From the NCBI GenBank assembly GCA_001949185.1, contig BDGG01000006.1, forward strand, positions 540,827 to 604,826: a stretch of DNA of 64,000 nucleotides, given 5' to 3'. How positions within the stretch are numbered: position 1 is the first letter of the stretch; every line of letters starts with the position of its first letter. Source of the DNA: Ramazzottius varieornatus (taxonomy: Eukaryota > Animalia > Tardigrada). The notes under the pieces were generated by a model, which worked only from the letters and a program-made list of their open reading frames with translations, did not search any database and was not told where the DNA came from. Position numbers and translations under genes: made by a program. This document shows positions 24,101-32,027 of this stretch, one piece after another.

Positions 24101-26703
24101 GCTGTAACACAAGGTGCACTGAACAACGTCACGTGTTTTGAGATTTTGCAGTGTTTCGTCACGCTGCTTCACGAACCTCAGTTGCAAAACGCGGAAGGCA
24201 GTACTAAGCGTTTTGGCTGGTCAAACAATCCTTGAGCCACCAATTAGTTGCAGCGGGAATCTGGCATCACCGCCGGCGCCGGCACGGCTGTGATGGATTC
24301 TTCTACATTTTCTTTTCTGACTCCCCCTGAGGAAGTTCCGTTTTTCTTCTAGCGCATGCACATGTTACACTTCTGCGTTACTGACAGAAGTGCTCCCTGT
24401 GGGTACTGAACTTCTGGTGAGTGCCGCCTGTCAGATTGGGACTGTTACGTGACTGCTCTGAATGTCGGCTTGCGTTTTGTACAAAATTACTACCGTAACG
24501 CCGTCTGTTTCCGTAGGAATCGAGCGGAGCCATTGGAAACAGCAAGAGTTGAACATCGCTGGGACGGTAGACCATTCAGGGACCTACCGCTTCGATAAAT
24601 CGCGGGTAAGCAAGACGTCAACTCTCTCGGCTGGCGGAGAAGACATATGTGCCCTGAATATCGTGCTCAAAGAATGGATTTGTACGCTACTCCCTCACCG
24701 TGTGACTCCGCACTAGCTCCGTACTTGATCTCTGTGTTTGCTAGGTCGGCGAAGGACTTGATGCAACTGGAACGAAAGGAAATACAGCGCATGCGCTACC
24801 TTTCTTCCGATCCTGGTGATCTTTCGGTGGCTTCAGTCTTTCTTTTGCTGTCTTCTCTCCCTCATTTGATTTCAAATCTGAATTCAGTTTTCGTTGCCGT
24901 TTATTTTTCTGTTTTCAGGTCTCAAAATAAGTTTAAAGATCTTTTTTCCCCGTTGAAATAAGCTTTTCTGTGCGAGTCCGGTCGAAGTAGTAAATTCGTG
25001 GTCCTTTCTTGGTTTCCCGGTTGCTTCATAGAAAGTGCACGGTTTCCCGGTACCTAAGTCAGTCCATGGTTGAGCCAAGGTCAGAAGTTTTTCTGACCCA
25101 TAGACCATGGCACATGAGCTACAGTGGGCAGGTTACGGTCCTATGCGCTCAGTTCCTTACGTCACGCTCAGCTGGTCGGTGAACCAAGGTAGTAATGTGG
25201 CAGTGCCACTCATCCACCGTACACCACACAGTTATACGGGGTGACGTATTGACGAAAGAGAAATTCGACAAAATGCAACCTTCCCACTGTGGCCCATGTG
25301 CCATGGCCAATGGGACAGGAAAACCTGCCAATATTCAGTAAACAGAACTGGACACCGGAGCCCGGTACTAATGTTTTATAAATTTGAAACTAGGGTCCTT
25401 TTTTTATTATTATTAAGATGTTTATCACCCGAATTAAAATATATTTTAATACCAGTAACGCTACCGCTGATTCGAAGAATTCTGCGTGTGCGCTGATTAT
25501 GTGGCGTACGACCACGCCTCACGAAGTGCACCAGGTCCTAATGATGGCTTGTGATGCTACCACACCAGCACGGAAGGACTAATGCAGATGCACACGCGTA
25601 CACCATGCAGCTACACATAGCGCGACACACTAAACCGCCATATCGCAGAGTGCAGGTGCACGGTGCAAGCTGTATATAGGGAATTGATACTGCTTACGAC
25701 AAAATACACTGAGCCCCAAAGCATCTGTCCACCCTTCTCAACGCTACTTCGCGGCAAATATCTTCCATTCTAAGCGTTCAAAACCGAAGCACATACAGTC
25801 CAAATGAAGCTTGAGAACTGCTCGTTCACTTAATGCAAATATTGATAAGATTCATCTGAGACTAAATTCTCAAACAGTTTTTTAACACGAGACGGTAGAA
25901 AATGATCATCTGTTGCGCATCGTAACCTGTTCGGGGAAAAAATGTTGCCAACAAACTTTTGCTCATACCTTTCAACGTTCAATAGCTCGATGAAAAGCTG
26001 TTGTCCTCCTTCACCTCCGCAATATGTCTCAGTATCGAATGAACGAGTTTTCGGCAATCCTCAAGCTCAATTCCGAACCACACTTCTTCGATAGCTTCTT
26101 CGAGCTGGCCGATGTTCTTTTAGATGTTTTCCCCTCAGTTTTCTTTCAAATTGTGCCCAAATGCTCTATAGGATTCAAGTCTGGACTGTACGGAGCCAAG
26201 AACAGCAGTTCCGGATGGTTCTTTTTGAACCAGTCGTTTGCAAGAATTGAATCATGTTTAGGATAATGATCGTGCTGGAACAGCCATCCATGCTGCAACT
26301 TCAGTATCTTCGCCGACTGCTTCAAATTGTTCTTCAGAGTGTATCTGTACTGGAACCTGTCCATGTTTCCCCTCACAATAACAAGATTTCCGACACCTGC
26401 GGACGAAAAGCAACTGCATACCATGAAGTTCCCGCCACCATGCTTGACCGGCCGGTAAGCTTCACCTGGCTTTCTCCAATCCATAACCTTCCCACCCGTT
26501 CCCAAGTTGAACTTGGATTTGTTCGACCATAAGACGTTGTCCCAAAAAGAAACTGGCATTTCCCCGTACCTTTTGCAGAAGTCGACGCTTTTGTCGAGCA
26601 TGCTCTTTAAAAAACGGTTTCTTCAGAGCTAGTCTTCCGTTCAGGCCTTTCTCCCGACTCCGGCGACGAACTGTTTCCTTTGAAATCGACATCAATAAGC
26701 CCG

Positions 26704-27206
26704 ACACTGCAAACACAGAAATCAACACATCAATCACTGACCAAAGTGACGACCCAATCAATGAGACGAGGAATCCACTGAGGTAAAAGAGCCGGCTCTT
26801 ACCTTGGACAGTGTTGACGTGAGGACAGCGTGGTTGGAAATAGGTTTGCTTGATGGCAGGAACCAGGAACTCTCCACAACATTGGGTCTGGATGGCAATG
26901 AGGGTGGTGTGCGAGCGGATGTGGTCCAGGATGTTTTCCGCCTTCTTCTGATTCTTGCTGGTGACGGGGAGAGCTACTTCGAACTCCGGCCCACACACGG
27001 AACACTGGAGGGTACCGATGTCAGGATGCTGCAAAAAACAACACAGAAATCAGAAACTGGAGTACCAGGAAGTAAAACTGTAGAATACACAAATGAGGTA
27101 CCAGAATGCTCACCATTTGAGGACCTCTGATGAAATTCATCGTGAATACGCTAGCACAACTACGAAAGCAAGAGAGATTTCAAGTGAAGAACCACAATGG
27201 CGAGCT
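26704..27206. repeat. 503-bp direct repeat, copy 1 (left end of the insertion in Tc1)
   Basis: Identical to 30367-30869 (offset 3663) apart from one difference seen (27129 G vs 30792 A). Confidence 0.95.
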
Positions 27207-27827
27207 GACCACTCAACAGTCGGCTTTCATACTCAAATCTCGTAGGCGTGGCTCCAGCCAACGTACTTCATGATTGGTTGGAAACCCACCAGCGGAATAA
27301 CGAAAAAAATCTGCGAGCAGACCTGACGTGTAGTCGAATTTGGTCGTATAGTTCGATCGACTCGATTATTTTTGAAAATCCGTGAACAAACACACTGTGA
27401 ACAACGGTACCTGCTCAAATTATCTTTCGACCATAATGCCGACCACGAATATCGCCTGACCGAATACTGACCGACATTCATGTGTAAAAAGATATTCTTG
27501 ACAGTTAGTTTTGCGGTTATTTGATATTCAAAGTTAGTCAAAGTGCCGGTTAATATTCTACCCAAACGATATTCCGGTATAGTACCGTAAACAAAGGTCT
27601 GAGTCGCCCTATTGCTGTGCCATGCACCGCCCACTTCGTTCCGAGGTAACGCTGTGGATTATTCCCCATCTGCAGTTCTTGCAGCGCTGCTTTTGTTCCA
27701 ATTCTTAAGGTGCCTGGATTTTTGTATTTCAAAAGATTGCATGAACTCTAGTGATCGTTATCAGAGTTCAACTCTACCAGTAGCAATAGACCTTCACATT
27801 GTCTGTGTTTGGTCTTTGTCTTCCAGC

Positions 27828-29431
27828 ATGGCTTATTCAGGATAACCCGGAAGCAACATGCAACGGCGCTCCATGCGTCGTGTGGACGCAGGGTGTAGCA
27901 AGCGGTTGCATGTGGTTTCCGGGTCATCCTGAATAACAGAATAAGTCTGATCCAGGATGTGGTTCACAGAACATGAACGGCAAGCCAGTTTCCGTCCAGA
28001 ACCTGATGAACAGCCAGCAGGGCGGACAGCAGCGTGGAGGTGGACAGCAGCGCTGTTTCCCCGGTGGAAATCGGGGCGGAAACAGCAACGGCAGCAGCAA
28101 CGTCTACTCGTCCTGAGGAGGAAACTGGAACCGAGGCTACAACCGAGGTGGATAGACCGGCGGACAAGGATAAGGTAAGACTTCCGGTTCAGTTTGCACT
28201 TCCTCCTTCGTTCTAAGGCAAAGTTGGAAACTTCACTCGTCTCTTTCTAGTCTACTCTCCGTTGTTTTCGGTCTATGCTTTTCGCTTGTCTTAGGTTTCA
28301 ACGAGGGAATGCAGAGCCGAAGTCGATTTGGCATTGAGGAAGCCCGCAAAGCGACTCGACGTAGAAGCTGCCAGTTCTGCCAGTGAAGAGTTCCGCAAGT
28401 TGGAAATCAGCAAAGGTACTTCACAGCTTTTCTTCGGCTTTCAATAGTTTCGTTGCTCACTTTTCTCTTCCTATACTTCCTGCTTGAGGGTACGGTATAT
28501 CCAATCAATCTTTCTGGTTGCAGGAGACGCAGTCTGGTAACAAGTCCGAAGGCGGAAACCAGCAGACCGAAGTTAAGCCTGGCTACAACCCCGATCAGCT
28601 CTTCGACAACACCAGCTGCGATGCCATCGAGAAGGAACAGCAGAATAAGCAACGTGAACAGTGAGCCACGTTTCCCGTTCATTGTTTATCCTGGAATTCT
28701 TCGCGAAGGTTTCTACCCTGCTTCCAGATGAACTCAAATACAATGAATCATTTGGGAGGCCGTTACCTTAAGCGGCGCACGTTTCTGTTGTTACTGGCTG
28801 GTAGCGTGCGCCACTGGAATAAACGATCTCATGTTTTATGTTTAGCGGCCTCTCATTAGTGCTTTTTCCGGGGAAAAATTCTTTCTAGATTGGGTTGGAA
28901 TGTTTCCTGATGTTTGGTTCTTCTTTGCAGGATGAACAACCTGGATACGAGCAACCAATGGCAGGATCTGCGGCAGAAAGGGCGTCAGTACAACGCGGAA
29001 ACCTTCGGTATCACTTCCCGGACCTTCAACCGAGGAGGTCGCGGCGGACGAGGCGGCTGCCGTGGCGGTTATCAGAGCCAGAACCAGAATGGTGGCGGTG
29101 GATGGGGCAACTCTGGTGGCATGAACCGTGGAGGCCGCGGTGGTTTGTTCGTTGCTCACTGTTTATTTACCTAAATCGAATATGAAAGGTTTGGCTCATG
29201 ACTTGCTTTGTTTCACAACAGGTGACGGTCGTGGTGACGGTAGGCGTGCCAGTGGTGGTGGTAGTGGTGACCAGAATGGCGGCTCGAACCAACAGCAGGC
29301 CAGACAGCCCACTTTGTACTATGTATTTGCAGACGGATGGTAGGACTTACGCTGTGGCTCAACCAAGCAATGGTGGCGGTGCTGGACGCAACGGTGGTGG
29401 TCGTGGCGGTGGTGGTTACAACGGTGGGGAG
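27828..29431 (+). pseudogene. LSM14/Trailer hitch/CAR-1-like pseudogene (FDF-like, FFD and TFG boxes plus RGG tail; no LSm domain seen)
   Basis: Exons approximately 27828-28174, 28295-28415, 28524-28660, 28931-29142 and 29222 onward. FFD-box-like GYNPDQLFDNTSCDA; TFG box RQYNAETFG followed by NRGGRGGRGG; frameshifted FDF-like SD(F)DVEAA. Several in-frame stops and a MITE in codon 3. Confidence 0.75.
27836..27933. mobile_element. ~100-bp hairpin MITE inserted just after the ATG of the LSM14-like gene
   Basis: ~32-bp imperfect TIR TTCAGGAT(A/G)ACCCGGAA.C.ACATGCAAC.GC with TA on both sides; removing it restores the frame ATG GCT TAA CAG AAT AAG TCT GAT CCA GGA. Confidence 0.8.
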
Positions 29432-29660
29432 CACTATTCCCTCCACAACAAAATCCCGGGACGAGATCCCGGGTATATCAGATCCCGGGGACCCCCAATC
29501 CCGTGCTACATATACCCCGCGATCGACAAATCCCGTGATTTGTACAAAAAACCCGGGAGCATAAAATGTCGGGAAACCCTAATCCCGTGCTACGTATATT
29601 CCGCGATCGACAAATCCCGGGGTATGTACAAAAACCCCGGGAGGATGAGATCCCGGAGGA
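29432..29660. repeat. Transposon-terminus-like block of ATCCCG(G) motifs with an imperfect 84-bp tandem duplication
   Basis: Begins CACTATTCCC; about ten (AT)CCCG(G) motifs; AATCCCGTGCTAC...CGCGATCGACAAATCCCG...TGTACAAAAA(A)CCC at 29497 and 29581. Confidence 0.7.
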
Positions 29661-30244
29661 GTTTTATTTAGGCTTCAGTTGATATTACCTCCCAGATCCA
29701 TAAAGTTCATTTGAATTTTGAACGCATTCACTTTGATTTATGTCAGCTGTGTGAGTTCGTGCGGGACTTGACGGTTTGAACTCCCTCTACCTGTCATGTT
29801 CACCAATTCACACCGACGTGTTTCGAACCAGCGCGCTAATTGCTCTTGTGCTGAATGCGACTGTTGTAGATCGAATTTGTCGCTCATATGGATTTCCTTC
29901 GTTCTACCTCATCGTGTGTCTTCAAAACGTTTCTGCAGTTTCCCAATCGTTCTCTGTTTGTAACTCTCTGCTAAGTACTCTGTTGGAATTTTCTGTGCAA
30001 TTGTTGTAGTATATTTACGATGGCTGACGATGATGGACCTGTTTTGCAAGTCATGTTTTCGACCAAAATTGTATAAAATCATATGATTTTATGATGGAAG
30101 GCGAGCGAAATTTCACGTCTGCGCACGTCGCTTTTCATGTTACTGCATTTAGATACGATATGGAAAACAATGAAAAACACGGTCGATTTTAAAGGGTACA
30201 ACGAAAACCAATTCTCAAATCAAGATGTCCCATAAGGCAGTCAA

Positions 30245-30803
30245 CTAATGAAAAGTAGGGAAATCTTCGGGAAGCTGGTTGGCTCCGCCTCCTTCTCCAA
30301 CGAAAGGACCGACCAGTGCTGGATCCCGTTCGATCCCGATCTCTTCCTGCACGGTACCACCCACCAACACTGCAAACACAGAAATCAACACATCAATCAC
30401 TGACCAAAGTGACGACCCAATCAATGAGACGAGGAATCCACTGAGGTAAAAGAGCCGGCTCTTACCTTGGACAGTGTTGACGTGAGGACAGCGTGGTTGG
30501 AAATAGGTTTGCTTGATGGCAGGAACCAGGAACTCTCCACAACATTGGGTCTGGATGGCAATGAGGGTGGTGTGCGAGCGGATGTGGTCCAGGATGTTTT
30601 CCGCCTTCTTCTGATTCTTGCTGGTGACGGGGAGAGCTACTTCGAACTCCGGCCCACACACGGAACACTGGAGGGTACCGATGTCAGGATGCTGCAAAAA
30701 ACAACACAGAAATCAGAAACTGGAGTACCAGGAAGTAAAACTGTAGAATACACAAATGAGGTACCAGAATGCTCACCATTTGAGGACCTCTAATGAAATT
30801 CAT
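30245..30803 (-). CDS. Small (125 aa) Cys/His zinc-finger-like protein of unknown family
   Basis: Exons 30803-30777, 30691-30466, 30369-30245; GT-AG, 378 nt, no internal stop. MNFIRGPQMHPDIGTLQCSVC-x23-HIRSH...CCGE...CPH. A 3'-truncated second copy lies at 26704-27140. Confidence 0.6.
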
Positions 30804-30869
30804 CGTGAATACGCTAGCACAACTACGAAAGCAAGAGAGATTTCAAGTGAAGAACCACAATGGCGAGCT
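30367..30869. repeat. 503-bp direct repeat, copy 2 (right end of the insertion in Tc1)
   Basis: Matches 26704-27206; the ORF track gives identical peptides for both copies. Confidence 0.95.
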
Positions 30870-32027
30870 CCTCTTTGATCTCTGGAGCAGAAATGCGTCG
30901 ATCTTTCAGGGCTCTTCGCACAATAAGTCTGTCCGTCATCAGGGTAGTGATTAGCTCTCTTGCACACCGAGGTTTGTTCTGGACGCTGCCGGTCTCCTTA
31001 TACTTCTTGATCATGGAGTTGACGCTGGAGTGTGGAAGAAGCATCGGCTGAGCGATCTCCCTGTTTGAAACTTTATCCAGGTGCTTATTGATGACACGAT
31101 TTCGGATATCGTCGCTGTACTCCTTCAGCTTGCGACCCATTTTGAAGCAATTTTACGAGAACTTCTGAGACAATGAAATCAGCTGACTGCTTGTTGATTT
31201 CAATACCCCTAGCATTAATCTACACCCGTGAATTTGTAACAGCGAAACTAGTTTGGGATAGCGGAGAAAATAGTTTTTTCATGAAGTCGGTCTGCTAAAG
31301 TCAGATTTACGTTTTGTGTCGCGTTTTAGGTCTTCGTGTTTTACCACCACGACAGTCAGCTCTAGTTACAGTCCACTGTGACCGAAACCTTGCTGAAGTT
31401 TTCTTCTGTTCACGTAAGAAAACTAGAAACGATTTGGGCTGACGCGACGGGAGAAAAAGAAAATTTTGTGCTTGCGACAGTGGTGGACAGATACTAATGG
31501 GACTCAGTGTATCTCACCTGTCCTACGGCATGTCAGAGAATTTCCGGGCCGCCGCCGCGAGCAAAACCTACAGTTTTTTCTGAGCAGTTTTGATTCTCCG
31601 AGTAAATATTTAGTAGGGCTTCTGCTGACACAGATGCTTGTGATACCGTGTGGTGAGATCTACTGATAAGCTCTCGGTTACTAAAATATATTTTAGTACG
31701 AAACCCACAGGAGTTCAACTATAGTAATATTTTATTAAGACATGCAGAGGTTTTACTATAGTAATTGCAAGTTATTTAGACTTTAGTGGACGACGGATAT
31801 CTATTTTTATTGTAGTAAATGCCATAATCACATATTAGAACATCACTAGTCTGGGAGCTGTGTAGCACGGTAGTATCGGAACAGTGGAAACACGGCTTAT
31901 TTCCTGATTGGAGAAGGCGAAAATACACTGACACACCCATCAAAACCGATGACGTCACAATTTACTAAAAATACAGTGTAAAACTAGAACAGAATAACAG
32001 GAGCATAAGTCAGTTGGTAGACGCAAC

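Follow-up and report, generated by a model that had tools for sequence, protein, structure and literature searches.

Within a 64,000-nucleotide window of DNA (C6:540827-604826; the assembly has 55.8 Mb in 200 contigs, and its public protein records are those of Ramazzottius varieornatus), a Tc1 transposase gene is interrupted by a 4,166-bp insert of host-derived DNA. The insert is a circular permutation of a 3,663-bp unit with a 503-bp terminal redundancy, 1.14 units in all as assembled. Break repair has made the locus a Pack-Tc1, large and complex: DNA other than transposable element (TE) sequence lies between the two parts of one transposon, and both terminal inverted repeats (TIRs) of the transposon are kept. 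The circular permutation is real, and a circle is not needed to account for it. As for the route, the one tentatively preferred here, and it may well be wrong, is gap-filling repair of a break in an old, inactive Tc1, copied from an ectopic paralogous linear donor with a 3.66-kb backward jump.

The carrier transposon is recognizable on both sides of the insert. Its TIRs start at 25707 and end at 31509, with a TA beside each, and Pfam places HTH_SB at 31140-30868, HTH_Tnp_Tc3_2 at 26707-26465 and DDE_3 at 26601-26149, all on the minus strand. The presence of Tc1 domains on both sides agrees with a first-pass annotation of this DNA, according to which 4166 bp split a Tc1 transposase. DDE_3 is in another reading frame than the other Tc1 domains, which means that the transposase gene is broken quite apart from the split. 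Following a suggestion of the same annotation, uninterrupted Tc1 copies were aligned, and they define the empty site. The nearest of them (L030, L031 and L033), which are 85-90% identical to the window copy, read ...ATAAGCCC[G/A][G/A][C/A]TGG[G/A]TCTCCTCTTTG across the site, where the window has ...ATAAGCCCG, the insert, and then CCTCTTTG... The Tc1 and the insert overlap by 2 bp on each side, AC at 26704-26705 and CT at 30868-30869 (the ambiguous bases being assigned to the Tc1), and ∼5 bp of Tc1 (TGGAT-like) are lost out of about 1,640 bp; as the relatives are 10-15% diverged, the ancestral sequence can be given only to within a base or two.

No target-site duplication (TSD) flanks the insert in this alignment to the three uninterrupted relatives. 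Because the TSD is absent, ∼5 bp of Tc1 are lost and the overlaps are only 2 bp long, the sequence marks the insertion as break repair and not transposition. The first-pass annotation had likewise proposed entry into a break through microhomology without a TSD, and this view holds, although the homologies are tiny: the 6-9 bp that it had counted at the junctions are an overstatement, since the relatives encode ...EEIHLGLFMS... there and the real overlap is ∼2 bp per side. The site has the features of a Pack-TIR, in that non-TE DNA lies between Tc1 parts 25707-26703 and 30870-31509 with both TIRs kept, the breakpoints show short microhomology and are closely spaced inside the Tc1, and the cargo has no TSD.

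Two observations concern this Tc1 family and its surroundings. A related Tc1 on another contig (L032/L033, C14:495153-496948) is interrupted at the equivalent of window position 26515 by a 1.27-kb element. Recurrent capture of host DNA by the family was considered for this case and rejected: the interrupter is an ordinary multicopy TIR transposon, with dozens of genome matches and ∼31-bp TIRs, and not host DNA. Moreover, the DNA beside the window Tc1 (25506-25674 and 31669-31848) resembles C24:2703-3105 at 69-78%, so that the Tc1 appears to sit within another dispersed repeat. A literature search found no publications on the locus tags or on Tc1 in Ramazzottius varieornatus.

The ends of the insert are direct repeats, called R in what follows. 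A scan of identity at an offset of 3663 aligns 26704-27206 with 30367-30869 over 503 bp, with a single mismatch (27129 g, 30792 a), and the similarity drops to random level right beyond both boundaries; length, spacing and mismatch are as the first-pass annotation had given them. What is R? It is the middle of a minus-strand gene of three exons, gene G, and it comprises exon 1, intron 1, exon 2, intron 2 and 3 bases of exon 3. Exon 1 (MNFIRGPQM) is present in both copies, at 27140-27114 on the left and 30803-30777 on the right, and so is exon 2 (27028-26803 and 30691-30466). Exon 3, at 30369-30245 with the stop codon included, is found only beyond the right copy of R, and DNA from upstream of G only beyond the left one. 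The three-exon model of 125 amino acids is matched by two public paralogues, RvY_07793 (C3) and RvY_18895 (C22); exon layout and paralogue models together sustain the earlier description of the repeats as the middle of a spliced gene.

The permutation becomes evident upon comparison with other loci. A genome search with the insert gave partial copies at 85-98% identity on C26, C3, C22, C24 and the end of C11. On C3, C26, C22 and C24 the order is T-R-U, where T is the 3′ flank and last exon of G and U is its upstream DNA, and the homology runs through both boundaries of R. The window order, R-U...T-R, is permuted with respect to these four loci, which is the arrangement that a circular intermediate would leave. 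The permuted, terminally redundant topology of the first-pass annotation is confirmed by this difference in order from four colinear loci.

Within the unit, nearly every boundary has a conventional explanation. The segment B1 begins with the true terminus (GGTGGGGAGCA...) of a dispersed DNA-transposon-like repeat, and this terminus abuts a pseudogene of the LSM14 family with a short overlap. At least 10 genomic copies of B1 begin within 3 bp of the same point, with unrelated flanks; fuller copies have inverted subterminal CCCGGG repeats that are missing from the window copy. The segment B2 is similar: its true terminus is at 30035, its start, GGACCTGTTTCGCAAG, is common to ten other copies, and these run on as ...TAT followed by ACAATTCAAATTCT at the point where the window turns to G sequence, at 30091/30092. 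Left of 30092, four other G loci have one mutually shared flank, which is unlike that of the window. In view of their ends, B1 and B2 appear to be nested insertions of the ordinary kind, carried by the donor. With these two boundaries accounted for by real transposon ends, exactly one joint of the unit is left as illegitimate, the one at 30091/30092. No second occurrence of this joint was found in the 55.8-Mb assembly. It is a candidate for the closing joint of a circle, of a tandem repeat or of a backward template switch, and a circular intermediate would show just one fusion joint, at which the unit is closed. The junction at 29431/29432, which the first-pass annotation had taken for the closing point, is an ordinary B1 transposon end. 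The coordinates of all segments are collected in Table 1.

Table 1. Segments of the interrupted Tc1 and of its insert (window coordinates)
Feature	Position	Strand	Basis or remarks
Tc1 3′ part: TA 25705-25706, TIR from 25707, DDE_3 catalytic region, second helix-turn-helix (HTH)	25705-26703	-	Pfam and relatives
Insert of host-derived DNA	26704-30869	none	Junction alignment with three uninterrupted Tc1 relatives
R, left copy: G exon 1, intron 1, exon 2, intron 2, first 3 nt of exon 3 (26706-26704)	26704-27206	-	Model RvY_11210
U, upstream (promoter-side) DNA of G	27207-27593	-	Common to C3 parent and C26
Spacer	27594-27952	none	Common only to C26, C11 and C22 copies
LSM14-family pseudogene, 5′-truncated, introns kept; FFD and TFG boxes, RGG repeats	27953-29427	+	Parent on C3
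B1, 5′ part of dispersed DNA-transposon-like repeat, CCCGGG subterminal repeats	29419-30031	+	At least 10 copies with same start
B2, first ∼58 bp of another transposon family	30035-30091	+	Ten other copies
Joint of B2 interior to G downstream region, 1-bp T overlap	30091-30092	none	Sole illegitimate joint of the unit
T, 3′ flank and last exon of G	30092-30366	-	Related G loci
R, right copy: exon 1 30803-30777, exon 2 30691-30466	30367-30869	-	Model RvY_11213
Tc1 5′ part: first HTH, ATG at 31140, TIR end 31509, TA 31510-31511	30870-31511	-	Pfam and relatives

The LSM14 pseudogene deserves some further description. It has 77-83% DNA identity, introns included, to C3:3928964-3931011. The N-terminal domain PF12701 lies immediately upstream of this stretch in the parent, at C3:3928211-3928635, and is absent from the window, hence the window copy is 5′-truncated. 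In an exon-by-exon comparison with the parent, CGA has become the stop TGA at 28114-28116, and the reading frame is shifted at least twice. Pfam gives a weak FDF match in the pseudogene; a search of the genome with the FDF family matched nowhere, and the controls were likewise unmatched. Introns are thus retained on both strands of the insert, in gene G (-) and in the LSM14 pseudogene (+), as the first-pass annotation had read from the sequence. Its "heavily decayed" cargo pseudogene is decayed indeed, but one stop and at least two frameshifts amount to moderate decay, not heavy. Elsewhere in the unit, U carries a private 25-bp deletion in the window, and the spacer holds a 104-bp near-palindrome at 27833-27936 that is kept in the C26, C11 and C22 copies.

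Where did the insert come from, and when? The parent of gene G is at C3:3787195-3788383 (RvY_07793) and that of LSM14 at C3:3928211-3931011, and closer copies of parts of the insert are on C26, C11 and C22. None of these parents and copies is inside a Tc1, as is the case for the parental copies of Pack-TIRs, here without a full-length donor. The divergence of the insert from its nearest copies is 0.8% for C26 (27453-28521), about 1-1.7% for C3 (T and R) and at most 4% for C11 (28521-28970). The two copies of R are each other's closest relatives. Both carry a private catTtg where four of the four other family members have catAtg, and at their single mismatch the left copy has the family state while the right copy is derived; both copies therefore come from one source. 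A complete linear donor and other insertions with different permutation points, which the first-pass annotation had predicted as support for its reading, were both sought by the genome search with the insert; the assembly lacks the former, and no instance of the latter was found.

The C11 and C26 sister copies also have the stop of the LSM14 pseudogene and one of its frameshifts, and the decay of the pseudogene is consequently older than the insertion; on this point the first-pass annotation, which considered the copying recent relative to the decay of the cargo, was right. The Tc1, for its part, is 85-90% identical to its nearest relatives and has a broken frame, whereas the R copies differ by 0.2%. 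Tc1 decay and pseudogene decay both predate the event. The event is "recent" in a relative sense only, because a single mismatch in 503 bp leaves a wide margin of error and the repeats could be kept alike by gene conversion.

The related copies have peculiarities of their own. The G/LSM14 segments break off into unrelated sequence at the window equivalents of 28521 in L021 (C26), 28970 in L026 (C11 end), 27960 in L023 (C22) and 27154 in L025 (C24); the C26 break is 2 bp short of an intron/exon border, and the C26 and C11 copies are 99.8% alike. These family copies lie on small scaffolds or at a contig end, and the region represented by C26, C11, C22 and C24 is either rearrangement-prone or partly misassembled.

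The consequences for gene G are twofold. The right copy of R, together with T, restores the complete coding sequence of 125 codons, with a native 5′ flank of just 66 bp behind the 5′ end of the Tc1. The left part keeps the upstream region of G and exons 1-2, and there the acceptor of exon 3 now opens into Tc1. The public gene models reflect both situations. RvY_11213 (GAV00350.1; window 30245-31140, minus strand) joins Tc1 residues 1-95, by a splice from 30856, to exon 2 and then exon 3 of G, while RvY_11210 (GAV00347.1; window 26465-27140, minus strand) consists of G exons 1-2 followed by Tc1-derived VSGLLMSISKETV... The insertion has in this way produced two reciprocal predicted chimeric reading frames, Tc1-HTH::G and G::Tc1. 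Homologues of G were searched with its exons one by one. At this exon level no Pfam family matches G; outside its own species no homologue was found, as a word-based search was blank and an exhaustive HMMER search returned the paralogues of the same species and weak repeats. The ESM Atlas offers weak leads (0.8) to zinc-ribbon or Trm112-like proteins. G stays an orphan, cysteine-rich protein of 125 amino acids.

The fragment made of T and the right copy of R (778 bp, 30092-30869) extends from 66 bp before the start codon of G to 153 bp past its stop codon. It coincides approximately with one unspliced transcription unit of G. The fragment is not read as RNA-derived because it has no poly(A).

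How was the insert assembled? The facts to be explained are its structure, three joints of low homology (2, 1 and 2 bp), the lack of a TSD and the colinear order of the parental loci. According to the preferred reading, a double-strand break would have occurred in a Tc1 that was already inactive, and it would have been repaired by the transposition-independent gap filling that makes Pack-TIRs. The repair strand would have departed from the Tc1 at ...CCCGAC; in the donor, 2 bp where intron 2 of G meets exon 3 would have served for priming. It would then have copied 3.39 kb, namely exons 2 and 1 of G, the G upstream DNA, the LSM14 pseudogene and the starts of the two nested transposons. At 58 bp into B2 the strand would have dissociated and re-primed on 1 bp, 3,663 bp back on the same donor. 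From there 778 bp would have been copied, the whole G transcription unit, and it is by this step that the same 503 bp would have been copied a second time. Finally, the strand would have rejoined the Tc1 on 2 bp, 5 bp from its exit point. Two elements of this account we infer: a single replicative excursion did all of the copying, and it ran along a linear donor.

Support for this reading comes from the near-identical R copies with their common source, the T-R-U order at four other loci, the empty site as defined by the Tc1 relatives, the single illegitimate joint with genuine transposon termini elsewhere in the unit, the lack of mobility genes, the decay of the Tc1 and the likeness to animal Pack-TIRs. 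Several points weigh against the particular route proposed. The copying of 1.14 turns of a circle or of a tandem would equally yield this structure, and the insert, at 4.2 kb, greatly exceeds Pack-TIR captures, whose median is 224 bp. Copying should leave a linear donor in place, and the assembly has no high-identity match to 28971-30091, from which it follows that the actual donor is missing, unassembled or since rearranged; the genome search found no donor nearby on the same contig, and the donor is thus neither in cis nor fully assembled. The nearest family copies diverge by 0.8-2.6% and are themselves cut short at other points. There is also some slight chance, considered below, that the assembly is at fault. 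All four routes that lead to the observed structure need four breakpoints and three joints, and parsimony consequently cannot choose among them. The preference for the backward jump is based on the commonly documented outcome of such repair, namely serial switches guided by microhomology, with partial reduplication.

The first of the other routes is a physical circle, which the first-pass annotation had in mind when it asked whether the locus is the footprint of a re-integrated DNA circle. Host DNA of 3,663 bp, bounded 153 bp past the G stop codon on one side and 58 bp within B2 on the other, would have been excised or copied and end-joined at 30091/30092; the Tc1 break would then have copied 1.14 turns of it, or a rolling-circle or dimer product would have been ligated in. 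A closure by end joining would give just such a single illegitimate joint with a 1-bp overlap, and a circle would accommodate the permuted order with respect to four colinear loci and the common source of both R copies. The fact that the joint and 28971-30091 occur nowhere else in the assembly fits a lost episome, and there are precedents for permuted duplicates with 1-2-bp junction homologies in cattle and humans (PMC7450558). However, no feature of the sequence demands a circle. To go beyond one turn, the circle would have to be copied replicatively, which is an added assumption, and the published cases are of exactly one unit (PMC7450558). An excision scar should appear as a fifth copy of the G downstream flank joined elsewhere; the assembly has four high-identity copies of this flank, and all of them are still attached to the gene. 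The permuted 3,663-bp topology of the first-pass annotation therefore stands and the physical circle does not follow from it, since a linear jump-back, a tandem or two fragments yield the same product. On balance, a circle seems rather unlikely. The same topology would come from a donor with a head-to-tail duplication of the 3,663 bp in a poorly assembled region, 4.2 kb of which would have been copied or ligated into the Tc1 break. The family sits on small scaffolds and at a contig end (C22, C24, C26 and the end of C11), among Ns and numerous rearrangement joints, and a collapsed tandem could go unnoticed there; on the other hand, the 30091/30092 joint, which a tandem should contain, is not found elsewhere in the assembly, and this origin is improbable. 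No better can be said of the co-capture by end joining of two overlapping donor fragments (26704-30091 and 30092-30869), derived from sister chromatids or homologues. Overlaps of 1-2 bp at all three joints are compatible with non-homologous end joining, the number of breakpoints (four) equals that of the circle models, and about one in four random combinations of order and orientation would be expected to mimic the permutation. Yet both fragments would have to come from one 4.4-kb region, be free at the same time and enter the same break in the same orientation, and the donor is again missing.

Is the duplication perhaps a product of the assembly? The true locus would in this case hold one 503-bp copy or none, the assembler having looped through the repeat, and the family is indeed repeated and partly misassembled elsewhere. 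Nevertheless, there is no N in the window, one base distinguishes the R copies, and an assembler could thread the loop only through reads that contain the 30091/30092 joint. Such reads would mean that the DNA has a cyclic path regardless. The assembly was presumably built from Sanger reads and, if so, 503 bp would probably fit within one read. A pure artefact is unlikely, and markedly so. Least probable of all, to the point of being negligible, is a mobile element with 503-bp terminal repeats, be it a long terminal repeat (LTR) retroelement, one resembling terminal-repeat retrotransposons in miniature (TRIM), a Helitron or some other kind. Its attraction is in the near-identical terminal direct repeats and in the other genomic copies of R. 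However, at four of four other loci the homology crosses both boundaries of R, no copy among the other genomic loci stops at the R termini, and the insert has no TSD, element ends or mobility domains. A domain search of its nine open reading frames gave no reverse transcriptase, integrase, transposase or helicase; ends of the TG..CA or TC..CTRR type are absent, the insert ends reading ACACTG...GAGCT; and inspection by eye revealed neither a primer binding site nor a polypurine tract. The first-pass annotation had noted the lack of a TSD, reverse transcriptase, integrase and transposase, had stated that the repeats are not LTRs, and had named copies sharing the same termini, as in an LTR/TRIM-like family, as the sign that it was mistaken; the junction alignment, the nine reading frames and the four loci colinear through the R boundaries are all on its side. 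A Helitron was rejected for its missing TC/CTRR ends and because the insert ends inside G, where other copies continue. A processed retrocopy was rejected as well, as G and the LSM14 pseudogene keep their introns and the insert has neither poly(A) nor TSDs.

Ramazzottius varieornatus is an animal whose biology revolves around double-strand break repair, and this locus shows, base by base, how a dead transposon, once broken, can give rise to a duplicate of a whole small gene together with two reciprocal predicted host/transposase chimeras. A permuted structure of more than one unit is rare among described Pack-TIRs, and it makes the locus a testable one for small circles versus serial template switches. 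If it is only the scar of template switches, it is an unusually large and well-resolved case of a known process and not a new one. There is a smaller chance, and no great one, that the insert is what a free circle of host-gene DNA (3.66 kb, with its closure at 30091/30092) left in the germline after acting as a rolling template in the repair of the break. This would be a case of movement of a complete gene by extrachromosomal circular DNA (eccDNA) in an animal famed for surviving massive DNA breakage, and the eccDNA route might then be among the ways in which genes are duplicated and chimeras arise in tardigrades.

Four known systems invite comparison. Circular genomes and molecules, such as organelle, geminivirus-like and hepadnavirus DNA or plasmid concatemers, integrate at greater-than-unit length, and the outcome is similar: a permuted, terminally redundant insert joined by end joining. 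Those are known replicating circles, whereas the unit described here is chromosomal and no replication function was detected in it. Complex rearrangements by microhomology-mediated break-induced replication and fork stalling and template switching (MMBIR/FoSTeS) were reportedly described by Hastings and colleagues in 2009. With these the insert shares serial template switches on 1-2 bp, partial duplication of the template and the return near the original site. They are usually local copy-number variants at stalled forks, in contrast with a donor on another contig and a product inside a transposon.

A third system is that of duplications via circular DNA intermediates, with the human cSDPs and the KIT translocations of cattle color-sidedness cited in the same work (Chicote et al. 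2020, PMC7450558). The likeness is in the permuted blocks, in one fusion and two insertion joints, and in microhomology of 1-2 bp or small indels without homology. Those events span tens to hundreds of kilobases and exactly one unit; here the unit is 3.7 kb and 1.14 of it are present, which under a circle model requires replicative read-round. A full ancestral locus with which to compare the insert is also lacking here.

The fourth system is that of the animal Pack-TIRs, which a survey of 100 genomes found to have a median microhomology of 2 bp, adjacent internal breakpoints and capture after the death of the TE (Tan et al. 2021, Nat Commun, PMC8277862). TcMariner is their second commonest carrier, the median capture is 224 bp, and most single-copy cases are in cis (PMC8277862). 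The locus departs from them in its size, 4.2 kb versus that median, in its mosaic cargo with TE fragments, in the twofold, permuted capture of 503 bp, and in a donor that is neither in cis nor complete in the assembly. To our knowledge, no tardigrade was among the 100 genomes. The features in common are these: host DNA lies between the halves of one Tc1/mariner TIR element with both TIRs, the microhomologies are of 2 bp, the internal breakpoints are near-adjacent, the capture followed the decay of the Tc1, exons were captured, and chimeric transcripts are predicted.

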